A stretch of 64,000 bases of DNA, taken from Macrostomum hystrix (Eukaryota; Animalia; Platyhelminthes). This document shows positions 8,332 to 56,949 of the stretch, in pieces (position 1 is the stretch's first letter; every line of letters starts with the position of its first letter). The position numbers were made by a program, and so were the translations under genes. The stretch covers positions 1,736,001 through 1,800,000 of the forward strand of contig CATNEN010000032.1 of assembly GCA_950097015.1 (NCBI GenBank), written 5' to 3'. The notes beneath the pieces were generated by a model, which was given only the letters and a program-made list of their open reading frames with translations, was not told the DNA's origin and did no database searches.

Positions 8332-11300
8332 ATGACGCTACTCTCTGTCGGGCTGCTGACTGCTGCCTGCGTATTCGTCTGCTGCCCACTGCTCACCGAA
8401 GCCACAGTTAGAGGGGACTCTGCTGTCGCCAAAGCCGCCGCCGATCTTGCGCTGACTCTGGACGCTGTGGAACGCGCGGTGGCCTTCATGGGGCGACACA
8501 CCCGGAGCGCCAATCTGGACGGCGGCATCGGACTCCGAACAGTGGAAGGTAAGCAGAGGAGAGGAGAGGAGAGGAGAGGAGAAGAGAGGAGAGGAGAGGA
8601 GAGGAGAGGAGAGGAGAGGAGAGGAGAGGAGAGGAGAGGAGAGGAGAGGAGAGGAGAGGAGAGGAGAGGAGAGGAGAAGAGGAGAGGAGAGGAGAGGAGA
8701 GGAGAGGAGAGGAGAGGAGAGGAGAGGAGAGGAGAGGAGAGGAGAGGAGAGGAGAGGAGAGGAGAGGAGAGGAGAGGAGAGGAGAGGAGAGGAGAAGAGG
8801 AGAGGAGAGGAGAAGAGGAGAGGAGAGGAGAGGAGAGGAGAGGAGAGGAGAGGAGAGGAGAGGAGAGGAGAGGAGAGGAGAGGAGAGGAGAGGAGAGGAG
8901 AGGAGAAGAGAGGAGCGGAGGATATGAGTGGATTAACAAAATCAGCAGTTCAGTGCCATAAAGATTCGAACCCATGCCCACCAAGGTCAATTCGGAGGCC
9001 TTCTGGCGCGCCATTGGACTGAAATGCCTCTGTGGCTGGTTACTAGGCTAAAATCGATACAGTCTTCGGCTGGGCGCGTTGCCAAGGAGACGTCGAGCTC
9101 GGCACACCGAAGCACACCATTGTACTTTGCCAGTGAGTAGATACTTTGCACTTTGCACAGGAGTTGGGGCAGTTGGATGCAATTGATTCGTTTAGTCTAT
9201 TGACTGGAAAATCTTGTTTGATCTGATCAGAAATCGAATTGAATTTTTTGTTAACTATCAATGGGGTGGGATTTCATCGATCATGTCAGGACAAATTAGT
9301 CTGAAAACTTCGCTTGCTGAATCCTGCTCAAGCTAATGTCATTTTATCCGGCTGGAAATGCAACATAGCAGTTAGTCACTTGTTTTGCATTTGATGTTGT
9401 CATTTTTTAACCAATAAGGATTCGCCATAGAGAACTGTTAGTCGACCCTGTCACCAGTGCCTTCGACAAGAATCGCGGAATGTCTCGACGATGCTGACTC
9501 GGTCGGCTTTGAAAGTTAATTTACAGTAAAGGGCGGAAAATGTCGATCCATATTGTGGACTTTCACGAAAATCGGTCATTCGGTTTGGGAGCTGTCGTGA
9601 AGTAGGCAGTGGGTATGTTTGAAAATCTTCCGTTGTCCTCCGCAGGGTAGAAATGGCCCTGCGTTTCGTTTCGAAAGAAAAGATTAGGAATCAATTCGAA
9701 AAAGTGACAGGGTTGAGAGGTCAAAGGGATCGGGGAGGTCAACGGGATCGGGGAGGTCAAAAGGATCGGGGAGGTCAAAGGGATCGGGAAGGTCAAAGGG
9801 ATCGGGGAGGTCAAAGGGATCGGGGAGGTCAAAGGGATCGGGGAGGTCAAAGGGATCGGGGAGGTCAAAGGGATCGGGGAGGTCAAAGGGAGGAGGATCT
9901 TTTAGAAGTTATCGCAAATTTGAAGTTCGCAACGATTGACGGTCCGAAATTCCCCCTCCACCCACGGTCAGACGCAGGCCGTCTCCTTGACGACCACTCG
10001 TGGGACGCCTTCTTCCCCAGCCGTCAGCTGCCAATGAGTTCCGGCGCCGCGCTGCTGGCCGAGGCGGCGGCCACAAAGGCCGCCCTTGCTACCGGTGCCG
10101 CTGACGAGGACGACGGATTCGACGAGAAATTCAGCGACGACTGCATCCGCGAGTTCTACGGAGCGTCCGGGTGAGGCCCAAACTGGGGATCACGGGGAAA
10201 CGGAAAATTTTCTCCATCTCACAATAACAGACAAAATCTCTTTTTAAAGAACAATTGAATTCCATTTGAGAAAAACTGCTGGATTGGACTACTAAAAGCA
10301 TTTTACTTACCAATAAGAAAAATTCTTTTACAGGCGACCTGCCTGTTCAATCTCGAATGGCTGCTGGGACACAATGGTCCGATCCGAGGGTCGTCGGGAT
10401 TACTTCCTGACGCACCAGGTCTTCTATCTGCTTAGCGGAATCAATGTGAGTGCTTTATTATAAAAATACTGGCCTCTCAATGGACTGGTGTCGAAAGAGG
10501 AGTGACGTGGGTGTCGAAACTGGAGTCAGGTGGGTGTCGACATTGGAGTAAGGTGGTTGTCGACAGTGAAGTGAAGTGGGTGTCGACAGTGAAGTGAGTT
10601 AGGTGTTGACATTGGAGTGAGGTGGGTGTCGACAGTGGAGTGAGGTGGGTGTCGATAGTGGAGTGAGGTGGGTGTCGACAGTCGACTGAGGTGGGACCGA
10701 CAGTGGACTGAGGTGGGTGTCGACAGTGGAGTGAGGTGGGTGTCGACAGTGGAGTGAGGTGGGTTAAGACAGTAGAGTGGGGTGGGTTAAGACAGTGGAC
10801 TGAGGTGGGTGTCGACAGTGGAGTGAGGTTGGTTAAGACAATGTAGTGAGGTGGGTTAAGACAGTGGAGTGGGGTGGGTTGAGACAGTGGACTGAGGTGG
10901 GTGTCGACAGTGGACTGAGGTGGGTGTCGACAGTGGAGTGAGGTTGGTTAAGACAATGTAGTGAGGTGGGTTAAGACAGTGGAGTGGGTGGGTTAAGACA
11001 GTGGAGTGAGGTGGGTGTCGACAGTGAAGTGAGGTGGGTTAAGACAGTGGAGTGAGGTGGGTTAAGACAGTGGAGTGAGGTAATCATTCTTTAACACAAA
11101 CCCCTCCACAAAATCTGCCATGTGATATAAACCACCCACAATATTGCGATCAGCCTTCTTAAAGCCACCTTTTTTACTTACTTGCCTGGCTCGTAGAGAG
11201 CCCTTTAACAGAATAACCTGTCCTAAAAGACAAATCTATACTAAAAAATTCCATGACGCAACAACCCTTCAGGCCAACTGCCTCTACAACCTGACCGAGA

Positions 11301-14163: not shown

Positions 14164-14628
14164 ACTAAGTACTGAATTCACCGCCACTTGATTTCACCGC
14201 TTTTTGAAACAAACTTTTAACAACCAAAACTATATAAAATCGATTGCGCAAGTTAATTTAGAGATGCGCCTAAATTTCTAGCACTGCGCGTTCCGTCGGG
14301 GCTGCATAAGAGCGATTTTTTGTTTTATTTTAGGCGGTGAACCGGCGGTGAACTAGATAAATGTAAATTATTTTTTGCGCGTAATTGCGCATGAAAAGCG
14401 GTGTTGCATTTTAAGTTTACACGCCTTTGCGCGATCCTTTTAGCATCTCAGAGTCGTTTTATATGCCTTTGGCTTCATGAAATTGCCTGTTAAAGTATTT
14501 TATTTAAAACAAAGCTGGCGCGAATTCGAAATCAATACACATGCTCGCGGAAGTCAGATTGAATTGAAACATCGACTTATTGATTTATCTCGTATGTATG
14601 CCCTTAAAAGTAAAAAATACATTACAAA
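14164..14628 (+). repeat. Left terminal inverted repeat (465 bp), starts ACTAAGTACTGAATTCACCGCC
   Basis: No mismatch seen by eye against the right TIR; contains repeated TTCACCGC/GCGGTGAA motifs. Confidence 0.92.
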
Positions 14629-16859
14629 ATTGAAGTTACTAATTGGGTACACAGTGCTACACACAATGGCCCCCTCCCTGTGGGCGAAATTGAAGTTGAA
14701 AATTGAAATTGAAAACCAATAGTAAATAGTAAATGAATCCTAGGCTAGGCACCTTGGCCTAGTATTAATTCCTTAACAATAAACATATTAACAATATTGT
14801 TTCTTAATTGTTCATTTCTCGAATTCCTAGAAAAATATCTTTTATTAACTTATAAAAATATTACTATGCATCATTGAATGGTAGGGGCCTATATCTTGGG
14901 TTTCTAGGCCTAATTTTAAGGTTAGTAAGTACAAGTGTATGTTACAAATTATGGTCTAGTCATATTATAAAGTAGCGCCTAATCACTTTTTGCCTTATAT
15001 TGCCTTTCTTGTTTTAAAAAAAATACTGTCATCATTTCTATCTATAAACTTTTCATCTGTAAGTATTGGGCCAATTGTATTGAATAACCAGAGTTGGCTA
15101 TTTGATTAAAATACCTTCGTAGTTTATAAAATTATTTATAATCATTTAGGTCCATTCAGTCTTGGTAATACTTGCATATAACAAACATCAACATGATTTA
15201 CTAGGCCTACTATTACAACTTAACATTGGAAGTAACAATTTGATATAATTTTGTAGGCATCCTCAATTAGGCTTTAAAGTGCTGTCACAACACTATTATA
15301 GACATTTTGTCAATTGAGTTAAGTAGGCCTATTTCCATGTATAAATTTGTATTTATTTTGTGAAAAAAACTAAAAAACACAATTATACAATGTTTGTATG
15401 TTGCCTTGTGCAAACTATAAGAGCCAATACTCTTGAAATAATTGTTTATTATTTGTGAGTACTCACAAAAACCAATCCAAGGTTTCAGATGGCCAATAGC
15501 AGATAGCAAAGTGACCTAGGTTGGATTCAGTGCCATGATTGTGCCAGTGTTGCCTACAGTGTAATTGGCCAGCACCATTCCCACCTAGACATTGTGGACT
15601 GGTTTGGACATTTGCTATTCTGCGGATCACTTTAACCAGAGCTGATTGTGTCAACAGAACAACTATTTACCAAGCACATTGTAATTTACTTTTTTTTATA
15701 AATAATCCTAACTCCTATGTGAATCCCTTGTTGTTTTTTTCGGGGTTCATGTGGGGTATGCTGCTTTCGTTTCACCATAAGAATGCAAGTGCATGTGGTG
15801 TGTCATTTTCGCTAGTTTTTTAGTGCCCAAATGTGCCTGTAGGCTGTCATGGAAAGGTTGCTTGTTTACAATGCATGCCAAATATAAAAGCGCCCCCATA
15901 TGCATTTCAAAGTCAATTTTTCAACATTAACCTAACTGTGTTTCTCGCTTCAATAGCCACACTGCCGAACCTATTGTGTTGTTTGTCGTCCTGTCAAATT
16001 AAAAGGCATTTTAGACATTTAAAATATACTACACTTCTAGTGCTTTAGATTTATTCCTTTATTATTTTAGCATATATAGCAGATATAATAGAGTTGACTT
16101 GCTGTTTTTCCCGAATTGGTGTAAAATGCGACTATTAAGTAATCAAAAGCAAATCAATACGAGTATCAGCATTTCGTTCAGCATCAAAGAGTTCTTTTGT
16201 CGACTCCCATTCCAGGTTTAGCGCTCCTTAAAAAAGAAAACATACATTTAAAAAGGTCTCTCTGTCTTCACGTTTAAAGCAAAAAAACTCTATTTCAGCC
16301 GAACTTCTACTGGGTGCATATGCCCTACAGACCGAGTCAAGAGGGGGGCTCAATAATTTATTGTACTCGTACTTTTGCGTGGCTGCTAGAAACTAATTAA
16401 CATATCTTCACGATCTTTGTATAGTTAAACAGCGGGTTTGTAATTCTATCATTTGATGTAAGATCAAATTCATACAGCTGAACTGTCGGATCTCTATAAT
16501 GGTATAGAAATTGGGAGTCAACTGGTTAAACAATATAGAGTAAACTCCGACACCGTTAAAGCAGTTAAAGCATTGACTGGCTGGACAGCCTTTCATTGTA
16601 CTCCAGACTCAACGTGTTGAGTGTGGCTGTGTTTCAACCGCGTTCAGAAGTAATAGCGCATTTCGAGCGCTTAACTCGAAAGGTCACCATGAAGTTACAT
16701 TACTACGAGTAGAAATCACTAAGATTTTGGATGTGACCCAAGGAGTAGAAAGCTCAACGTTACTCCGATCGATCGGCATCCAAGTAATTTTCGGTGAAAA
16801 ATAAAAGCCAGCAGTAAAGACTTAAAACTTTATAAGCATAGTCAAATGATATTTGCTCC

Positions 16860-45034: not shown

Positions 45035-48000
45035 TTACCAAGAGCCTTCTCCACTGCCGGGCATCGATTGTTGCTGATTGGCAGCCGCGCCAGCAGCAGC
45101 AGCAGCAGCGGCGGCGGCCGGCGTCCAGATTGGGTCCCTGGCCCAGGGCACGCACTCTGGCGGCGGCGGCCGCTCCGACTGGCAGGCCGGGTGTCGCTGG
45201 AGGCGAAGGAGCTCGGCTCGCTGCCTCTCGTCGGCAAGGCGTTCGACGAACACGGAGTCCAGGCGCTGCTTCATCCGGCGCAGCTCGTCGCTCTCCCAGG
45301 ACAGGCAGCGAACTCTGGCGGCCTCGGTCGAGTCTAAGTCAGCGCCGGCCTCTTCATCCGAGCTGGTGTAGTCTCTAGTGAGCACACTCTGATAGCGAGC
45401 TCTGGTGGACTCGTCTAGGTCATCTTTGATTGCTTCAAAGCTTTTCTGTCGTCGGTTGAGCTTCTGTTTTGATGTGGCGAGGCGGCAAGTGAACAGAATT
45501 GTGAGTCAATGTTCAGCTGGAAAGATAGATGTCTCGAGAGTACTAGAAAAGGTAAGCATAAGCTATCAGAATGTCTGGGAGATACTAAAGCGACCAGAAT
45601 AGCTGGGAGAGAAATTGAAGCTACCAGAACATTTGGATGATAGATAATATAGAAAATCTAGCTCGTAGCTAATAGAATGTCTTGGAGACACTGAAGCTAC
45701 CAGAGTGTCTTGGAGAGACTGAAGCTACCAGAATGTCTTGGAGACACTGAAGATACCAGAGTGTCTGGGAGACACTGAAGCTACCAGAGTGTCTTGAAGA
45801 GACTGAAGCTACCAGAATGTCTTGGAGACACTGAAGCTACCAGAGCGTCTTGGAGACACTGAAGCTACCAGAATGTCTGGGAGACACTGAAGCTACCAGA
45901 ATGTCTGGGAGACACTGAAGCTACCTGATGTCTTGGAGATATTGAAGCTACCAGAATGTCTGGGAGACACTGAAGCTACCAGAATGTCTGGGAGACACTG
46001 AAGCTACCAGAATGTCTGGGAGACACTGAAGCTACCTGATGTCTTGGAGATATTGAAGCTACCAGAATGTCTGGGAGACACTGAAGCTACCAGAATGTCT
46101 GGGAGACACTGAAGCTACCAGAATGTCTGGGAGACACTGAAGCTACCTGATGTCTTGGAGATATTGAAGCTACCAGAATGTCTGGGAGACACTGAAGCTA
46201 CCAGAATGTCTGGGAGACACTGAAGCTACCAGAATGTCTGGGAGACACTGAAGCTACCAGAATGTCTGGGAGACACTGAAGCTACCAGAATGTCTGGGAG
46301 ACACTGAAGCTACCAGAATGTCTGGGAGACACTGAAGCTACCAGAATGTCTGGGAGACACTGAAGCTACCTGATGTCTTGGAGATATTGAAGCTACCAGA
46401 ATGTCTGGGAGACACTGAAGCTACCAGAATGTCTGGGAGACACTGAAGCTACCAGAATGTCTTGGAGATATTGAAGCTACCAGAATAATGTCTGGGAGAG
46501 AAATTGAAGCTAGTAGAATGTGTGGGGCAGCTCAAATGCCTGTCTGGGTGTCAGTGACCGCGTTACTCACAGTCTGAATGAGTATCATTGAGTTAAACTT
46601 ATTCTTTCTAGACTTGGCAACAAAGTCCCGTCTGAGACGCTGGGTGTACCAGTTGCGCAAGTACTTCACTGACAAAACTGAAAACGGTACAGTGACAGCC
46701 AATGGCAAGGCTAGCTAAACACGTCAATCTTACAATAAAATATTTCAGTTAATCACGATCGAGAGCGACGTTGCAGACCCATGGCGATAGTCTTAACCAA
46801 AGTGTAAGGCAACATTTTCTTTTTTTCTTCTTTGCTTTATTTTGTTATAAAGGCGGAATGCATTCGCGGAAGTGTCTGCTGATGGCGTGTGCTCATTGGG
46901 GTGGGTCTGTTGATGGCGTGTGCTCATTGGGGTGGGTCTGCTGATGGCGTGTGCTCATTGGGGTGGGTCTGTTGATGGCGGGTGTACATCGAGGTGGGAT
47001 CTGTTGATGGCGTGTGTACATCGAGGTGGGATCTGTTGATGGCGTGTGTACAGTGGGGTGGGATCTGTTGATGGCGGGTGTACATTGGGGAGGGATCTAT
47101 TGATGGCGGGTGTACAGTGGGGTGGGATCTGTTGATGGTGGGTGTACATTGGGGAGGGATCTGTTGATGGCGGGAGTACAGTGGGGTGGGATCTGTTGAT
47201 GGCGGGTGTACATCGGGGTGGGATCTGTTGATGGCGGGTGTTCATCGGGGTGGGATCTGTTGATGGCGGGTGTACATCTGGGAGGGATCTGTTGATGGCG
47301 GGTGTACATCGGGGTGGGATCTGTTGATGGCGGGTGTTCATCGGGGTGGGATCTGTTGATGGCGGGTGTACATTGGGGTGGGATCTGTTGATGGCGGGTG
47401 TTCATTGGGGTGGAGTCATTGGAAAGCAGGGTGTACACTCGGGTGGGTCTGTTGATGGCGGGTGTACATCTGGGAGGGATCTGTTGATGGCGGGTGTTCA
47501 TTCGGGTGGAGTCATTGGAAAGCAGGGTGTACACTCGGGTGGGTCTGTTGATGGCGGGTGTACATCTGGGAGGGATCTGTTGATGGCGGGTGTTCATTGG
47601 GGTGGGATCTGTTGATGGCGGGTGTTCATTGGGGTGGAGTCATTGGAAAGCAGGGTGTACACTCGGGTGGGTCTGTTGATGGCGGGTGTACATCTGGGAG
47701 GGATCTGTTGATGGCGGGTGTTCATTGGGGTGGAGTCATTGGAAAGCAGGGTGTACACTCGGGTGGGTCTGTTGATGGCGGGTGTACATTGGGGTGGATT
47801 CAGTTGAAGGCAGGGTTGTACACTGCGAATAATACATGTTTACATCAGAAATAAAGCACTCACGGACTGAACGAAAATCAATGAATTGAGCCTATTTTGT
47901 CTGGCTTTGGATTGGAAATCGCGCTTTAGATTTTGGCTGTACCAATTGCGCATGTACTTTCCAGCATTTGCTGAAACAAGTGTGACAAAATAATCTCTTC

Positions 48001-51000
48001 GCTGCTTGCCTGACTCTGTATGAGGTGGGCAGCTTTAAAAATAACAGTGTGCGGCCCATCGCAAAGGAGTTTTAAGCAAAAATAATGGTGTGCATTGAAA
48101 TTTCACCAGGTCAGAAGAAATGTAATTTAGGAATGATGAGCTTTTAGAACTAATAAATGAAGCTATATCGCTCAATGTTGGTGATTAAAGCCAGCCCTTA
48201 AGATGAGCTAGCGCTGAACTTTAAGTAGACTTACAAACTGGGCAGAGATCAGTGAGTTAATTTTAGTCTGCTTGGCTTTCGCATTGAATTCGCGTTTAAG
48301 ATACTGGCCGTAGTAGCGCACATACTTCATTGAGACTTCTGAAAGTAACATGCTTGAGTGCTACAAAAACTCCGCTATACATACATGGAGCCTGAGGGAC
48401 ACATCGCAAAAATGTTTAAACAGCTGGAAGCAAGTTTTTGTTTACTAACCGTGAGATTTAAAGTAGTTACACTAGAAATTCTTCTTTTTTAGGAATTATT
48501 TTTTAACTTTTGTACTTTTTAACTCCTGTGTGTGCACCTCTGTGTACAACTCCAATAGAGTGAGGATGAATACAGACTGAGTGTACATTTTCAGTGGAGT
48601 GAGGTTGGATGCAGACTGACTGTACACTTTCAGTGGAGTGAGGTTGGATGCAGACTGAGTGTACACTTTCAGTGGAGTGAGGTTGGATGCAGACTGAGTG
48701 TACACTTTCAGCAGAGTGAGGTTGGATGCAGACTGAGTGCACACTTTCAGTGGAGTGAGGTTGGATGCAGACTGAGTGTACACTTTCAGTGGAGTGAGGT
48801 TGGCTGCAGACTGAGTGTACACTTTCAGTGGAGTGAGGTTGGATGCAGACTGAGTGTACACTTTCAGTGGAGTGAGGTTGGATGCAGACTGAGTGTACAC
48901 TTTCAGTGGAGTGAGGTTGGATGCAGACTGAGTGTACACTTTCAGTGGAGTGAGGTTGGATGCAGACTGAGTGTACACTTTCAGTGGAGTGAGGTTGGCT
49001 GCAGACTGAGTGTACACTTTCAGCAGAGTGAGGTTGGATGCAGACTGAGTGTACACTTTTAGCAGAGTGAGGTTGGATGCAGACTGAGTGTACACTTTCA
49101 GTGGAGTGAGGTTGGATGCAGACTGAGTGTACACTTTTAGCAGAGTGAGGTTGGATGCAGACTGAGTGTACACTTTCAGTGGAGTGAGGTTTGCTGCAGA
49201 CTGAGTGTACACTTTCAGCAGAGTGAGGTTGGATGCAGACTGAGTGTACACTTTCAGTGGAGTGAGGTTTGCTGCAGACTGAGTGTACACTTTCAGCAGA
49301 GTGAGGTTGGATGCAGACTGAGTGTACACTTTTAGCAGAGTGAGGTTGGATGCAGACTGAGTGTACACTTTCAGTGGAGTGAGGTTTGCTGCAGACTGAG
49401 TGTACACTTTTAGCAGAGTGAGGTTGGCTGCAGACTGAGTGTACACTTTCTGTGGAGTGAGGTTGGCTGCAGACTGAGTGTACACTTTCAGTGGAGTGAG
49501 GTTGGCTGCAGACTGAGTGTACACTTTCAGTGGAGTGAGGTTGGATGCAGACTGAGTGTACACTTTCAGTGGAGTGAGGTTGGATGCAGACTGAGTGTAC
49601 ACTTTCAGTGGAGTGAGGTTGGATGCAGACTGAGTGTACACTTTCAGTGGAGTGAGGTTGGCTGCAGACTGAGTGTACACTTTCAGTGGAGTGAGGTTGG
49701 ATGCAGACTGAGTGTACACTTTCAGTGGAGTGAGGTTGGATGCAGACTGAGTGTACACTTTCTGTGGAGTGAGGTTGGCTGCAGACTGAGTGTACACTTT
49801 CAGTGGAGTGAGGTTGGATGCAGACTGAGTGTACACTTTTAGCAGAGTGAGGTTGGATGCAGACTGAGTGTACACTTTCTGTGGAGTGAGGTTGGATGCA
49901 GACTGAGTGTACACTTTCAGTGGAGTGAGGTTGGCTGCAGACTGAGTGTACACTTTCAGTGGAGTGAGGTTGGATCCAGACTGAGTGTACACTTTCAGCG
50001 GAGTGAATTGGAATACAGACTGAGTGCACATTTTTAATGGAGTGCCAATGTATCTGAATGGTATTAGAAGATAAGACGAGCTAGTACTCACAGTCTGTGT
50101 GATAATTAGAGAGTTCAGTTTAGTTCGCTTGGCCTTGTTATTAAAATCGCGCCTAAGATACTGGCGATACCAGCTGCGCAAATATTTAGCGCTATTAACT
50201 GAAAGCAAATAACTATAATTGAAATTTTTTCAAAAGAACCTCTATAATCTGAACGGCGCAGAGGAACTCATCGCAAAATATCAGTCACGATAATATCAGT
50301 AAGTACAGTAAGTGTGCATCTAGACTGAATGCTATTACGTCGTTGTGACAGTTCGTTAGAAATGCGTAATTTCGCGGCCTGGTGGAGACTGAGAATAGAG
50401 GGGTTAGTCTGGTTAATCTACACTGGGAGTGAGGGGGTTAGTCTGGCCGATGTACACTGGGAGTAAGGGGGTTAGTCTGGCTGATGTACACTGGGAGTAA
50501 GGGGGTTAGTCTGGCTGATGTACACTAGGAGTGAGGGGGTTAGTCTGGTTAATGTACACTGGGAGTGAGGGGGTTAGTCTGGCTGATGTACACTGGGAGT
50601 AAGGGGGTTAGTCTGGCTGATGTACACTGGGAGTAAGGGGGTTAGTCTGTCTGATGTACACAATGAGCGTGGGAGGTTAGTCTGGCTGATGTACACTGGG
50701 AGTAAGGGGGTTAGTCTGGCTGATGTACACAATGAGCGTGGGAGGTTAGTGTGACTGATGTACACTGGGAGTAAGGGGGTTAGTCTGGCTGATGTACACT
50801 ATGAGCGTGGGAGGTTAGTCTGGCTGATGTACACTATGAGCGTGGGAGGTTAGTCTGGCTGATGTACACTATGAGCGTGGGAGGTTAGTCTGGCTGATGT
50901 ACACTGGGAGTAAGGGGGTTAGTCTGGCTGATGTACACTGGGAGTAAGGGGGTTAGTCTGGCTGATGTACACTATGAGCGTGGGAGGTTAGTCTGGCTGA

Positions 51001-54000
51001 TGTACACTGGGAGTAAGGGGGTTAGTCTGGCTGATGTACACTGGGAGTAAGGGGGTTAGTCTGGCTGATGTACACTAGGAGTGAGGGGGTTAGTCTGGTT
51101 AATGTACACTGGGAGTGAGGGGGTTAGTCTGGCTGATGTACACTGGGAGTAAGGGGGTTAGTCTGGCTGATGTACACTAGGAGTGAGGGGGTTAGTCTGG
51201 TTAATGTACACTGGGAGTGAGGGGGTTAGTCTGGCTGATGTACACTGGGAGTAAGGGGGTTAGTCTGTCTGATGTACACTGGGAGTAAGGGGGTTAGTCT
51301 GGCTTGCTTAAGCGAATCTAGAACGCTCTCATCAGCGGTACAGCACTCACAGTCTGCAAGCTGATCAGTGAGGAAATCTTTGACTGATCGAATTTGGCTC
51401 TGAAGCTACGCTTTAGAAACTGGGTGTACCAGATCCGCAGATATTTAAATGAAGCAGCTAAAAATGGCAAGTTTTGCAGACGTTATTAAAAATAGGAGAA
51501 TAACGGACAAAAAACTTGAGAACTGCGCGGACGAGTTGCAAGGCCAAAGTAGAAAATGCCCCTACATTAACTTACAAGAGTGGCTGAAATGCTAAAGTTT
51601 GGCTTTAGCCGACGCAGATAAGGATAGCGCCAGTTTTTAGAATAGTGCGGCTTCAAATAGCGATGACAGGAGGCTAGAAAGTTGAGCAAAAGCATCATTT
51701 ATAGACTCAACTAGCAATAACACAGAGGGCTGGCCGGATAGCAAAGAGCAACTTTAATTCGGAGAATTTTTCTCCTTGGCAAGTGTGAACCCCAATGTCC
51801 TAGAATTACTAACCATTATTTTTGTAAACAATTTTGCACTATCAGATTTGTAAGACTTGCGCTTGTGATCTCGTTTTAACACGCTGTCAAAGTAGATTCT
51901 AAAGTAGAGCGTCATCATTCCTATGCAATTATTCAGATTAGAATGCAATGTGCAATTCATACTACTGCACAAAGTAGAGGTTCATTAAAACAAATGCAAG
52001 CTAGCAAAGGAGTTGCAGTGGCTTTCTCGCATTAACTCAAAACATTTCTTACTATGATTAACTAACAGCATACAAAGTAAGAAGTTATGAAAATATTGAT
52101 TCAAAATCCTTCGACTTCGTGTCCAACATTTGGTACTGGGGTTTAATTGGTTCTTGGATTTGGTACTGGTGCTTAATTGGTACTTAAATTTGGTACTGGG
52201 ATTTGATTATTGTGGTTCGCTACTAAGGTTATGTACCAATCCTTTTTTATTTGGTACTGGGGTTTAATTGGTTCTTGGATTTGGTACTGGTGCTTAATTG
52301 GTACTTAAATTTGGTACTGGGATTTGATTATTGTGGTTCGCTACTAAGGTTATGTACCAATCCTTTTTTATTTGGTACTGGGGTTTAATTGGTTCTTGGA
52401 TTTGGTACTGGTGCTAATTGGTACTTAAATTTGGTACTGGGATTTGATTATTGTGGTTCGCTACTAAGGTTATGTACCAATCCTTTTTTATTTGGTACTG
52501 GGGTTTAATTGGTTCTTGGATTTGGTACTGGTGCTAATTGGTACTTAAATTTGGTACTGGGATTTGATTATTGTGGTTCGCTACTAAGGTTATGTACCAA
52601 TCCTTTTTTATTTGGTACTGGGGTTTAATTTGTTCTTGGATTTGGTACTGGTGCTAATTGGTACTTAAATTTGGTACTGGGATTTGATTATTGTGGTTCG
52701 CTACTAAGGTTATGTACCAATCCTTTTTTATTTGGTACTGGGGTTTAATTTGTTCTTGGATTTGGTACTGGTGCTAATTGGTACTTAAATTTGGTACTGG
52801 GATTTGATTATTGTGGTTCGCTACTAAGGTTATGTACCAATCCTTTTTTATTTGGTACTGGGGTTTAATTGGTTCTTGAATTTGGTACTGGTGCTTAATT
52901 GGTACTTAAATTTGGTACTGGGATTTGATTATTGTGGTTCGCTACTAAGGTTCTGTACCAATCCTTTTTTATTTGGTACTGGGGTTTAATTTGTTCTTGG
53001 ATTTGGTACTGGTGCTAATTGGTACTTAAATTTGGTACTGGGATTTGATTATTGTGGTTCGCTACTAAGGTTATGTACCAATCCTTTTTTATTTGGTACT
53101 GGGGTTTAATTGGTTCTTGAATTTGGTACTGGTGCTTAATTGGTACTTAAATTTGGTACTGGGATTTGATTATTGTGGTTCGCTACTAAGGTTCTGTACC
53201 AATCCTTTTTATTTGGTACTGGGGTTTAATTGGTTCTTGGATTTGGTACTGGTGCTTAATTGGTACTTAAATTTGGTACTGGGATTTGATTATTGTGGTT
53301 CGCTACTAAGATTATGTACCAATCCTTTTTTATTTGGTACTGGGGTTTTGAAACTGGAGATTTTGGTACAAGGACATTGGTATTTGGTCTTGGTCTTGAT
53401 ACTAGGATTTAGTACAGGGAGAATCTTAGAGATTCGGTACAGTATGATTTTATTTTAGTACTCTGGTAATTAGATTTTGCACTATAATTTAGGTATACTA
53501 GGTCTCCGTTACAAGAAGGTTTCGGGTGCAGAATTTTAAATCTAGTGCTTAAAATCAGAAAAAATGAGTATGATAGCACAAGAGTAAACATACAGACAGG
53601 AATCTCTGATTTACCCGCATCTGCTGCAACAGTTTGGCATTGCCATCCTTGACAACTTTTAAGTTGTTATCTCGTTTTAATACGCTGTAGAAGTAAATCT
53701 TAAAGTAGCGATCCATCTTAGCTGATAATTTTAAGGATTTATTAGAAGATAGAAAAAAACTGCGTTTTAGCTATTTGCTGGCGGGTATGGCATTTCTAAG
53801 AGAGTCTGATTTCAGAGAGTGCTGCAGTGGCTATCATAAATGTCATCCATTTTTTGAAGCATAAACCACACACTTAAGAACAAAAGTCTAGAAAAGGATA
53901 GTTAATCGAGGCATGTGGTGAGCTTCTTACCAGATTACTGGTGACAATTCTGGCCATCCTAGCAGCATCCTCGAACTTTTTATTAGTAGGCTTCAGGGTG

Positions 54001-55743
54001 GACTTGTAGTAGATGCTCAGGTAGTGCTTCATGGCACTGTCTGTGCGCATAAGGCCGATAGTTTTGTCAAGCAACATGTCAAGGCACTCACAATGCGCCT
54101 AATATTCCACTAACTTCAGCCGCTTTCAGGCGAAATTGTGTCAAAAAGTCCTATTTTTTTCTATATAAATTTTAACAGAGCGAACACGCTAATTAGTTGA
54201 TTAAATATCATATTTGGCAGGTTTTCTCAGCTTTCAACCGCATCAGAAGGGCAGCTGAATGTCAGTTATGATCGCTCATTGATTTAAAAAAGCAGACTTA
54301 AAAAATTGGTATCGATAAACACAATAGAAATCCCGCCTGAAGCCACACTGAATTAAATAAATTTAAATTAAAGCTGCGAGCGATCAGCTAACCAACCGGT
54401 GCTTTATTAACTTTAACCTAGGCGAATGTGTAAAAACAATTTAGTGACATCTTTGCGATGGCCCTGCAACGCCCTCTGATAACAAATAACCTTAAATGAC
54501 TAATGAATAGTGCGACAATTAACTCCTCCTTTCGGAGGACTTTTCTGCTTTTATAAAATAGCAGATAATTGATCTTGAAAAATTGGGATTAAACTCACTG
54601 CGCCACGCTTCGACATTGGCTGGTCTCTGCCGGCCCAGCGACAGGGCCTTGTCAATCACCCTATTGGCTGCCAGAACGTTGGCTCTGGCTGAATACGGGA
54701 GGGCGAAGTCGAACACATTGCTCCCAGTTTCTTCTTTTAGCACCCGGTAGGCGCGTCGAAGGATTCCCTTCCATTCGTTGGACAGTTCGGAGGAGCTGCC
54801 TTCCTCGGCGCCGCCGCTGACGCCAGCACCAGAGGAGCGACCACCGGCGCCAGGCTGTCTGTTCGAGAACATGGACGAGTTTCCTGAGCCGGACTGGTCA
54901 AACATAATATCCGTCTCCATTAGAACGCAATCGTCGTCCGAGTCGTTTATTGTGGCCTCTAATTTCATAGCTGCCGCTGCTGACGATGCTGACGCCGAAG
55001 CGTTTGAGGACTGCTGCTGTTGGTGCTTTTCAGATTTCTCTGACTTAGAGGCCGGAGTGTGCTGGTGATGATCAGCGAAGGCCGGCGGAGGCGGTGGGCA
55101 CTTTAAATGAAACATGAAAGAGAGTCAGATCAGCTTAGCTTAGACGCAGTCAGATCACATTAGATAAGGAATCTAATCCCATTGGATAAGGAATCTAATC
55201 CCATTGGATAAGGAATCTAATACCATTTGATAAGGAATCTAATCCCATTGGATAAGGAATCTAATCCCATTAGATAAGGAGTCTAATCCCATTAGATAAG
55301 GAATCTAATCCCATTAGATAAGGAATCTAATCCCATTAGATAAGAAATATAATCCCATTAGATAAGGAATCTAATCCCATAAGATAAGGAATCTAATCCG
55401 ATTAGATAAGGAATCTAATCCCATTAGATAAGGAATCTAATCCCATTAGATAAGCAATCTAATCCCATTAGATAAGGAATCAGGTTCTACTCATCGAGCT
55501 CACCATGGCGTGCTCGTCAGCGACGCTCGCCAGTCGTTGCACGGCGGGATCCAGGACATCCATGAGGTGACCGTGCAGCTGAGCCACAATACGAAAGGCC
55601 ATGAGGAGATCTCTGACAGCCATATTGTCTATGAGCATAGTGGCACTGGAGATGGTGCACTCAAACATGGTCAGCGGTGAGAAGGTGCCGGCGCCGCTTG
55701 CAGACCCGAGCTGCGACGGCATGGAGAAAGCGGTGGACGCCAT
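45035..55743 (-). CDS. Paralogue B, C14orf93-like: exon 1 55743-55504, exon 2 55100-54599, [one of 9 cassette exons], last exon 45463-45035
   Basis: ATG|gtgagc to ttaaag|TGC (phase 0); exon 2 ends TGG CGC A|gtgagt (phase 1); last exon aaacag|AAG CTC AAC (phase 0) KLNRRQK..YTSSDEE..WES..LD..SERPPP..PWA; homologous to A and C. Confidence 0.85.
45680..46490. repeat. 28-bp minisatellite (CTGAAGCTACCAGAATGTCTGGGAGACA)n between B9 and the last exon
   Basis: Directly visible. Confidence 0.93.
46571..46677 (-). CDS. Cassette exon B9 (107 nt): ILSVKYLRNWYTQRLRRDFVAKSRKNKFNSMILIQT
   Basis: ttttcag|TT...ACT|gtgagt; 3n+2; homologous to B5-B8. Confidence 0.85.
46758..46790 (-). promoter_or_regulatory. 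Selector sequence for B9
   Basis: Plus strand ATCGAGAGCGACGTTGCAGACCCATGGCGATAG resembles the docking transcript ATCAGAGGGCGTTGCAGGGCCATCGCAAAG, so it is complementary to it in the pre-mRNA. Confidence 0.75.
46875..47810. repeat. 32-bp minisatellite between B8 and B9
   Basis: (GGGGTGGGATCTGTTGATGGCGGGTGTACATT)n with variants. Confidence 0.92.
47864..47970 (-). CDS. Cassette exon B8 (107 nt): TNAGKYMRNWYSQNLKRDFQSKARQNRLNSLIFVQS
   Basis: gtttcag|CA...TCC|gtgagt; 3n+2. Confidence 0.85.
48053..48066 (-). promoter_or_regulatory. Selector sequence for B8
   Basis: Plus strand GGCCCATCGCAAAG vs docking GGGCCATCGCAAAG. Confidence 0.7.
48235..48338 (-). CDS. Cassette exon B7 (104 nt): KVSMKYVRYYGQYLKREFNAKAKQTKINSLISAQF
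   Basis: ctttcag|AA...TTT|gtaagt; 3n+2. Confidence 0.85.
48392..48411 (-). promoter_or_regulatory. Selector sequence for B7
   Basis: Plus strand CTGAGGGACACATCGCAAAA matches both ends of the docking site. Confidence 0.65.
48560..50030. repeat. 39-bp minisatellite between B6 and B7
   Basis: About 37 units (GAGTGAGGTTGGATGCAGACTGAGTGTACACTTTCAGTG). Confidence 0.95.
50092..50198 (-). CDS. Cassette exon B6 (107 nt): INSAKYLRSWYRQYLRRDFNNKAKRTKLNSLIITQT
   Basis: gctttcag|TT...ACT|gtgagt; 3n+2. Confidence 0.85.
50259..50278 (-). promoter_or_regulatory. Selector sequence for B6
   Basis: Plus strand CAGAGGAACTCATCGCAAAA matches both ends of the docking site. Confidence 0.65.
50400..51302. repeat. 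34-bp minisatellite between B5 and B6
   Basis: (GGGGGTTAGTCTGGCTGATGTACACTGGGAGTAA)n with variants. Confidence 0.93.
51351..51457 (-). CDS. Cassette exon B5 (107 nt): TASFKYLRIWYTQFLKRSFRAKFDQSKISSLISLQT
   Basis: tttttag|CT...ACT|gtgagt; 3n+2. Confidence 0.85.
51535..51546 (-). promoter_or_regulatory. Selector sequence for B5
   Basis: Plus strand GTTGCAAGGCCA vs docking GTTGCAGGGCCA (12 bp with one G-U pair). Confidence 0.62.
51576..51673 (-). CDS. Cassette exon B4 (98 nt): TSCHRYLKPHYSKNWRYPYLRRLKPNFSISATL
   Basis: tttctag|CC...CTT|gtaagt; 3n+2; RYL..Y motif; more divergent. Confidence 0.65.
51723..51746 (-). promoter_or_regulatory. Selector sequence for B4
   Basis: Plus strand CAGAGGGC...ATAGCAAAG matches both ends of the docking site. 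Confidence 0.6.
51814..51920 (-). CDS. Cassette exon B3 (107 nt): RMMTLYFRIYFDSVLKRDHKRKSYKSDSAKLFTKIM
   Basis: tgcatag|GA...ATG|gttagt; 3n+2; close to B2. Confidence 0.8.
52012..52022 (-). promoter_or_regulatory. Selector sequence for B3 (short)
   Basis: Plus strand GTTGCAGTGGC vs docking GTTGCAGGGC. Confidence 0.45.
52125..53350. repeat. ~120-bp composite tandem repeat (about 10 units, internal TTTGGTACTGG subrepeats) between B2 and B3
   Basis: Sequence lines recur every 120 nt (52381, 52501, 52621, 52741). Confidence 0.93.
53615..53721 (-). CDS. Cassette exon B2 (107 nt): TKMDRYFKIYFYSVLKRDNNLKVVKDGNAKLLQQMR
   Basis: ttatcag|CT...CGG|gtaaat; 3n+2. Confidence 0.8.
53812..53840 (-). promoter_or_regulatory. 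Selector sequence for B2
   Basis: Plus strand TCAGAGAGTGCTGCAGTGGCTATCATAAA; in the pre-mRNA pairs along nearly the whole docking site (3 G-U, 3 mismatches, 1 bulge). Confidence 0.75.
53931..54040 (-). CDS. Cassette exon B1 (110 nt): NSAMKHYLSIYYKSTLKPTNKKFEDAARMARIVTSNL
   Basis: gcacag|AC...CTG|gtaaga; 3n+2; shares YL..YY/WY..TLKPT with the single exon of paralogue C. Confidence 0.82.
54451..54480 (-). promoter_or_regulatory. Docking site for mutually exclusive splicing of paralogue B (pre-mRNA AUCAGAGGGCGUUGCAGGGCCAUCGCAAAG)
   Basis: About 120 nt downstream of the exon 2 donor; complementary to sequences 50-120 nt upstream of B2-B9. Confidence 0.78.
55160..55480. repeat. 22-bp minisatellite in intron 1 of paralogue B (GATAAGGAATCTAATCCCATTA)n
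   Basis: About 14 units. Confidence 0.93.
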
Positions 55744-56949
55744 AGGGTGATGCTGGTGCAACGATCAACTGTTTCGATTCGGATAGGTTGATTAGGGTGC
55801 AATAAAGAGAGGCGACCTGTTTCTGCAAAAAGACGGATTGGGAATAATTGTAGGAAATGTAGCTTGTGCTTTGCTAACCGACACGTTTTTTATTAAACCT
55901 AACCAATTTTCCAATTTTCGTCTCTACCGATCATCGTTCCTCATGACCTTTCATGTCTCTTTATATCACCTTTCCCATCTTCTCGTAACCTTTTCCCTAT
56001 CCCTATCACCTTTCTCGTCTTTCCACGACTATTTCTCTCTGAACAGAAAAAACTGGCCAAAGCAAACATGCCTTAATAAGGTTACAACCGACAAGTGTTT
56101 ATTAGGCATTCAGGTGAACAATTTTAACAGCTGACGAGACGAACAAGCCAGCAAAGATGCACAGCAACTGCTAATAATCCTAAGTTTCAACAAACAATGC
56201 ATGGAAGCAGTGAAAGGTTGCAAATATACAAATGATATTAATAATAAGTTTACTATTGCTCTCATTAAAAAGGACGAGCTGTTAGACACACGCAATTGTT
56301 AGAAACATTGTTAGACAGGCAGAATCTGTGCAAAAAAAAGACTTGATATTCACATGTTCATAAGCAAATATGAAATAAATTTTACTTAAACAATTAAATA
56401 AATAGATTTAAGAAAAAGCTAGCATGCAGTATAATTCCTTGATTACTCATAAAAGCAGCAAATTAGTAATGAAAATCACAGGTGCTAATGGTATGTTCAA
56501 TAAAAAAACAGATAAATAAGTTGTTCTTGTAAGTCACTTTTTTATACATACAAAAAACTAAAAGTGTTGCTTTGAGTAAAATGAAATAGCATTAAAATAA
56601 GTTAATTAAACAACTCTGCAATATTATATTAGTGACCGCAAGGAAAACATTACATCAATTAATAAATTAATAAAAAGCGAAAACACGACAATACAGGCAA
56701 TTCAATTGTGAAGAAAAAATTAATTTTCAATAAAAACATCAGCCGAAGAAGAGATAATGATTAAAAAAATTATAATTTTTGTACGAAATCGTGTTTGGTA
56801 ACATGCAGACATGATTTTTTACTAGAAATTTAAACTCAAACAATCATTTATTTACACCATTTTATACAACAGAACAGTAAGAAATTAAGCCAAAATGCAA
56901 CACCCTTGCTGGAGCCCTATGAATGGGCGATAATAGTACATAAGACTGA

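Follow-up and report, generated by a model that had tools for sequence, protein, structure and literature searches.

A 64-kb stretch of contig CATNEN010000032.1 (assembly GCA_950097015.1) of the flatworm Macrostomum hystrix, referred to below as the window, harbours on its minus strand a gene (about 55761 to 45035) in which nine homologous cassette exons, B1 to B9, lie between the constitutive exon 2 and the constitutive last coding exon. The intron following exon 2 contains a short element, the predicted docking site, which is complementary to sequences located ahead of seven of these cassettes (putative selectors), and it is this arrangement that we examine here. Positions are those of the window, the pre-mRNA is read on the minus strand, and exon borders were set by RNA contigs from public runs. 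The cassettes measure 98-110 nucleotides (nt), each with a length of 2 mod 3, and the 3' end of exon 2 (...GTGGCGCA/gtgagt, i.e. GCGCA/gtgagt, the slash marking the border) is in phase 1. With cassettes of this length behind a phase-1 donor, one cassette restores the reading frame, and two or three do not. Exon 1 is 95-100% identical to its orthologues in Macrostomum lignano, and exon 2 shares 61% identity with the M. lignano protein PAA94809.1.

The initial annotation had placed a docking site of 30 nt at 54480-54451, about 120 nt after the constitutive donor, with complements upstream of B2 to B9, and all of these coordinates hold: the 30-mer begins 118 nt past the end of exon 2 (54599). When this 30-mer was compared by RNAduplex with sliding windows over the 9 kb of pre-mRNA that follow, each of the top nine duplexes without overlap was found upstream of a different cassette, in the rank order B9, B2, B8, B3, B6, B7, B5, B1 (a questionable candidate, 197 nt from B1) and B4. 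Their summed energy of -273 kcal/mol compares with -189 +/- 9.7 kcal/mol for 300 dinucleotide-shuffled docks (z = -8.7), and the comparison with shuffled controls, which had been proposed at the outset, thus speaks clearly for the docking site. Taken singly, the selectors of B2, B3 and B5-B9 were equalled by only 0-1 of the 300 shuffled docks and are individually significant. Their 3' ends lie 36-84 nt ahead of the cassette acceptors, and each dock-selector duplex, if formed alone, spans the core of the dock. Indeed, the dock is the unique peak of a scan in which every fourth 30-mer across the whole pre-mRNA (n = 2,590) was treated as a pseudo-dock and scored by the summed energy of its seven best windows, reaching -224 as compared with -183 for the runner-up (a coding segment of 73-80% GC) and a mean of -100 (standard deviation 21). 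The selectors of B6 and B7 are near-identical, and the introns upstream of the cassettes are otherwise unalignable (42% column identity), in agreement with the earlier description of them as unrelated.

Similar features are present in M. lignano, from which we compared the orthologous locus (L001), three paralogous copies (L002, L003 and L005) and four more distant paralogues (L004 and L006-L008). A dock core of 15 nt, GGGCGTTGCAGGGCC, is exactly conserved in L001, L002, L003 and L005, where it invariably has sense orientation and is found in the first variable intron, about 320-405 nt past the constitutive donor, and a version with two substitutions (GGACGTTGCAGGGCT) lies about 125 nt past the donor in L004. 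The flanks of the core differ completely between loci and the rest of the intron has nothing in common. The core is the longest exact word common to the variable regions, cassettes included (15 nt between the window and L001, 16 nt between the window and L002, 15 nt between L001 and L002), and its two 10-mers are the only 10-mers common to four of the five clusters. A dispersed repeat or transposon end as the source of the dock can be ruled out, since each orthologous locus has a single copy of the core, with no other copy on either strand in the 240 kb of sequence compared. The selectors are likewise present: the top duplex matches in M. lignano end 55-92 nt ahead of every non-first cassette. 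For example, the three best duplexes of L001 precede its three non-first cassettes, and the six best of L002 include sites ending 55-68 nt ahead of each of its five non-first cassettes. By the test of conservation in a related genome, another that the initial annotation had suggested, the arrangement is therefore retained. In none of the three loci compared between the two species is a selector present at the usual distance from the acceptor of the first cassette.

Spliced RNA was sought in four small runs (X3-X6, about 45-50 million letters), which we take to be RNA because their contigs carry spliced joints. One contig joins exon 2 (28 nt) to B2 and the last exon (30 nt), and another joins exon 2, B8 and the last exon. 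Exon 2 is further linked to B5, B7 and B9 by joints or loose ends, and B5 and B7 are linked to the last exon by loose ends. No joint between two cassettes was found in the contigs of these runs. In M. lignano, protein records that differ in the cassette alone (P0004/P0005 and P0025/P0006) agree with alternative use there. The coordinates of all features are collected in Table 1.

Table 1. Exons, predicted docking site and putative selectors of the cassette gene (window positions).
Feature	Position	Strand	Evidence and remarks
Exon 1, coding part	55504..55761	-	Open reading frame; RNA joint 55504/55100 in runs X3, X4; conserved N-terminal helix FSPLTMFECTISSATMLIDNMAVRDLL
Constitutive exon 2	54599..55100	-	RNA joints 55100/55504, 54599/53721, 54599/51457
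Docking site (38 nt, predicted)	54447..54484	-	Conserved core GGGCGUUGCAGGGCC at 54474-54460; species-specific flanks AUCAGA and AUCGCAAAG also pair
Cassette B1 (110 nt, proximal)	53931..54040	-	No significant selector; B1-type cassette conserved in M. lignano
Putative selector of B2	53806..53844	-	-34 to -37 kcal/mol, nearly full dock length; 0/300 shuffles
Cassette B2 (107 nt)	53615..53721	-	One RNA contig exon 2-B2-downstream exon
Putative selector of B3	51999..52032	-	0/300 shuffles
Cassette B3 (107 nt)	51814..51920	-	Homology to other cassettes
Weak or degenerate selector of B4	51722..51750	-	Matches dock ends only; 39/300 shuffles
Cassette B4 (98 nt)	51576..51673	-	Diverged type, conserved in M. 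lignano; 57% identity to L001:12723-12812
Putative selector of B5	51526..51560	-	Pairs with core; 1/300 shuffles
Cassette B5 (107 nt)	51351..51457	-	RNA joint exon 2/B5; loose end continuing into downstream exon
Putative selector of B6	50242..50282	-	Pairs with 3' flank and 5' flank of dock; 0/300 shuffles
Cassette B6 (107 nt)	50092..50198	-	Homology; RNA depth 0 over 50050-50241
Putative selector of B7	48375..48416	-	0/300 shuffles
Cassette B7 (104 nt)	48235..48338	-	RNA loose ends to exon 2 and to downstream exon
Putative selector of B8	48042..48071	-	Mainly dock 3' flank CAUCGCAAAG; 0/300 shuffles
Cassette B8 (107 nt)	47864..47970	-	One RNA contig exon 2-B8-downstream exon
Putative selector of B9	46757..46790	-	Strongest, about -36 kcal/mol; 0/300 shuffles
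Cassette B9 (107 nt)	46571..46677	-	205-nt loose end at exon 2 donor starts with B9 sequence
Constitutive last coding exon	45035..45463	-	KLNRRQKSFE...LTRDYTSSDEE...; open reading frame; loose-end consensus maps to 45463-45434

We consider it likely that these elements constitute a docking/selector system of the type described for exon 6 of Dscam1, which arose independently in a gene encoding a C14orf93-like helical protein. The uniqueness of the dock, the maintenance of core and selector spacing in M. lignano and the single-cassette RNA contigs all support this mechanism, which the initial annotation had already put forward. According to this reading, the dock would pair with the selector whose end lies 36-84 nt ahead of the acceptor of B2, B3, B5, B6, B7, B8 or B9, and weakly with that of B4, just upstream of the branch-point region of the cassette concerned. 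The selector capturing the dock would loop out the cassettes in between and bring the exon 2 donor to a single distal acceptor, so that this cassette would be spliced in, and the cassettes 3' of the chosen one would be skipped. B1, having no selector here or in M. lignano, would be the unpaired default. Since every cassette is 2 mod 3 in length, double or triple inclusion would shift the frame and such products would be lost. With somewhat less confidence, we favour a broader version, in which the switch is independent in Platyhelminthes, is older than the split from M. lignano and several gene duplications, and controls which of up to nine alternatives forms the central part of a long helix in a C14orf93-like family expanded in Macrostomum. 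Its origin is almost certainly independent of the arthropod systems, and as the host is a flatworm, independent evolution here spans phyla.

Several observations weigh against this reading. The complement ahead of B4 is not above chance (its energy is reached by 39 of 300 shuffled docks), so that the proposed series of complements from B2 to B9 stands for seven of the eight. As had been noted before, B1 has no clear selector, its best duplex being reached by 61 of 300 shuffled docks; neither of the best candidates, 54276-54238 and a broken helix immediately ahead of the acceptor when intron 1 is folded, is better than shuffles. Moreover, the expectation that only one duplex can form at a time is borne out in part: the conserved core is included in every duplex formed singly, from which at least partial competition follows, but when the 38-nt dock is folded together with two selectors in a simple three-piece model, at least 6 bp are retained by both in 13 of 28 selector pairs. 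The dock acts as a core plus a 3' flank, and competition is partial rather than absolute. No element was found that would explain the skipping of cassettes 3' of the chosen one, and a search for a second, downstream dock or bidirectional pairing (30-mers against the regions 3' of each cassette) gave GC-rich coding matches only. Spliced RNA was obtained for five of the nine cassettes (B2, B5, B7, B8 and B9), and splicing of B1, B3, B4 and B6 was not observed in the small runs. When 25-mers of M. lignano were scanned as pseudo-docks by energy alone, the core came second, behind coding repeats of 88-92% GC.

Compensatory covariation, likewise suggested beforehand as a test, gives a divided result. 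In the window, the selectors bind their own dock at -32.4, as compared with -23 to -24 for the M. lignano docks, with which the core alone is shared, and shuffling only the 10-nt flanks of the dock weakens the binding (z = -5.8, 0/200). The selectors of the window lineage, and those of the B5-B9 expansion especially, match flanks that the M. lignano docks do not have. On the negative side, the flanks have no significant effect in M. lignano (L001, z = -0.6; L002, z = -1.5; L004, z = -0.1), and the substituted core of L004 is not preferred by L004's own selectors. By this comparison, covariation is clear in only one of the two species.

Alternatively, the pairing could be real and yet serve as a mere RNA bridge, which activates distant acceptors by shortening the effective length of introns that are filled with satellites and reach up to 7.9 kb, exclusivity being due to the loss of frame-shifted mRNAs by decay or to some repressor, and not to competition over the dock. 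This explanation would account for the uniform 2 mod 3 length of the cassettes, for the many selector pairs that can share the dock, and for the fact that the proximal cassette needs no selector at any locus. A bridge, however, leaves it unaccounted for that each lone duplex covers the same conserved core, and that close cassettes such as B4 and B5 (introns of 118-140 nt) also have selector-like sites, although that of B4 is not significant; we regard it as unlikely.

The complementarity might also be a functionless relic, with the selectors left over from a duplicated unit of intron and exon and the dock being an old inverted copy. The cassettes clearly derive from tandem duplication, and the near-identity of the B6 and B7 selectors would fit such an origin. 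Yet the remainder of each upstream intron has diverged past alignment, while the core does not belong to a dispersed repeat, is unchanged between species and paralogues and is better conserved than any other word in the region, exons included, and selector spacing has been maintained in M. lignano; a relic is accordingly very improbable. Just as improbable are single-stranded protein-binding sites with incidental complementarity, since dock and selectors are reverse complements and not copies of each other, and their pairing tolerates G-U and reaches into the species-specific flanks, even though a short and strictly conserved core could be bound by a protein and Rfam contains no matching structured RNA family.

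Some further sequence features concern the dock and its partners. A diverged dock candidate with three substitutions, GCGCAUUGCAAGGCC, is present in one of the distant M. lignano paralogues (L006:8239-8253), and its best partner, GGCCAUGCAAUGC (10300-10325), lies 71 nt ahead of a cassette; in this isolated case, a G-to-A change in the dock has its counterpart in a C-to-U change of the selector. The second-longest shared word after the dock core is a word of 12-14 nt, (AA)ATTATCAGCTAA, which occurs in the acceptor region of B2 (53732-53719) and at two intronic sites of L001 (12309 and 13650), and could represent a second element or the remnant of an acceptor. In the strain used for runs X3 and X4, four nt are inserted at 48066 (AAGT, plus strand), adjoining the B8 selector but outside it, and there are single-nucleotide polymorphisms at 48200 and 48252.

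The long introns of the cluster are each filled by a satellite of their own (52128-53348, 50400-51304, 48558-50044, 46875-47816 and 45667-46526), with units of 120, 34, 39, 32/96 and 28 nt. These satellites are unrelated to each other, and a palindromic core, [AG]TGTACA[CT], is common to three of them. The equivalent introns of the M. lignano orthologue also contain satellites, of unrelated sequence (L001:12820-13500 and 14330-15890).

The host protein belongs to a family that we found in Macrostomum. An exhaustive HMMER search with exon 2 yielded 14 proteins, of which all eight that were looked up by name are from M. lignano (best identity 61%), and a second search with a full-length relative as query likewise returned M. 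lignano proteins only, which rules out an insect origin of the window. Neither the exons of the window nor the full-length M. lignano relatives match any Pfam family at E <= 1, PF15394 (C14orf93/DUF4616) included. In an AlphaFold model of a full-length relative (P0004), the predicted local distance difference test (pLDDT) is 80-93 over the C-terminal half, with a predicted template modelling score (pTM) of 0.41. The model places the cassette mid-way in a helix of 56 residues (248-303), which runs on into the KLNRRQK motif, itself invariant; throughout the family, the parts flanking the exchanged segment on both sides contain W, K, L, R and Q residues that do not vary. Human and mouse C14orf93 are the only clear Foldseek matches in Swiss-Prot (E = 8e-5 and 2e-4 over the full length, the next match being at 0.2), with a template modelling score of only 0.24, and an Atlas lead points to DUF4616 with a score of 0.88. 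The gene is, as stated earlier, not an Ig-domain receptor, and the label 'C14orf93-like' for what the model depicts as a helical protein appears reasonable but unproven.

Three tandem paralogues are present on the minus strand of the window (60831-57741, 55761-45035 and 40613-36149), in an order that is kept in the M. lignano contig NIVC01000001.1 (L001:5273-24212). The upstream paralogue, in which there is only one cassette (about 58897-58847) and the dock core is absent, can serve as a natural negative control. In the downstream paralogue (paralogue A, 39434-36544, minus strand), a variable region of 2.9 kb contains cassettes of another type (L..W...SRKY.RRN), with a possible dock, GUGCGCCUACUG, just past the donor (about 39418) and UAGGCGCA motifs at about 37514 and 37466. 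An energy scan for a dock in paralogue A was no better than controls, and the same was true of a mismatch-tolerant count of complements for docks in six further clusters.

To our knowledge, large docking/selector arrays are known essentially from arthropod genes, and outside arthropods only two-exon cases such as ATE1 have been described. Our full-text literature search gave no paper in which Macrostomum is treated together with mutually exclusive exons, or docking/selector pairing with Spiralia; where mutually exclusive exons are mentioned in work on flatworms, other genes are concerned, e.g. coq-2. The mechanism proposed here is of a known class, the phylum and the gene family are new for it, and it appears to be the first docking/selector case in a flatworm. 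If the reading is correct, this would be the first multi-exon system of its kind outside arthropods, in an animal amenable to transgenesis, and the RNA-structure route to the choice of one exon out of many would be a recurrent result of tandem exon duplication instead of an arthropod peculiarity. It would also suggest that diversity is regulated in a family of uncharacterised proteins that is related to human C14orf93.

The closest parallel is exon 6 of Drosophila Dscam1, in which a dock located after exon 5 is complementary to a selector before each of 48 variants (PMC6071210). As in that gene, the intron that follows the upstream constitutive exon contains one predicted dock, no other intronic element being so well conserved; the putative selectors, found just 5' of the variable exons, are complements of dock segments that overlap one another; and the exons are tandemly duplicated and of similar length. 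The flatworm locus differs in its phylum, in its unrelated gene (C14orf93-like, no Ig receptor), in having nine exons and not 48, in a dock of about 30-38 nt, and in a proximal exon without a selector; further, no repressor such as hrp36 is known for it. In insect 14-3-3zeta, Mhc, MRP1 and srp, mutually exclusive exon choice has likewise been linked to competing intronic pairings (PMC6071210, PMC4691838). There, either the dock follows the cluster or pairing is bidirectional, whereas the flatworm dock is upstream and no downstream dock was found. Mammalian ATE1, a non-arthropod example, also has competing intronic elements: conserved elements compete for one partner and thereby control the mutually exclusive exons 7a and 7b (PMC7797038). 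Unlike the flatworm array, however, ATE1 has two exons only, with additional ultra-long-range helices and no selector array. Finally, Ivanov and Pervouchine have proposed from fly and human data that duplication of an exon together with one arm of a stem leads to several selectors per dock (PMC6071210). This model fits the lineage-specific expansion of B5-B9, in which each copy has a selector, and the present locus would be a new and independent example of it, with a 15-nt core, 4-9 selectors, two species and several paralogues providing a compact natural system for how such arrays grow.

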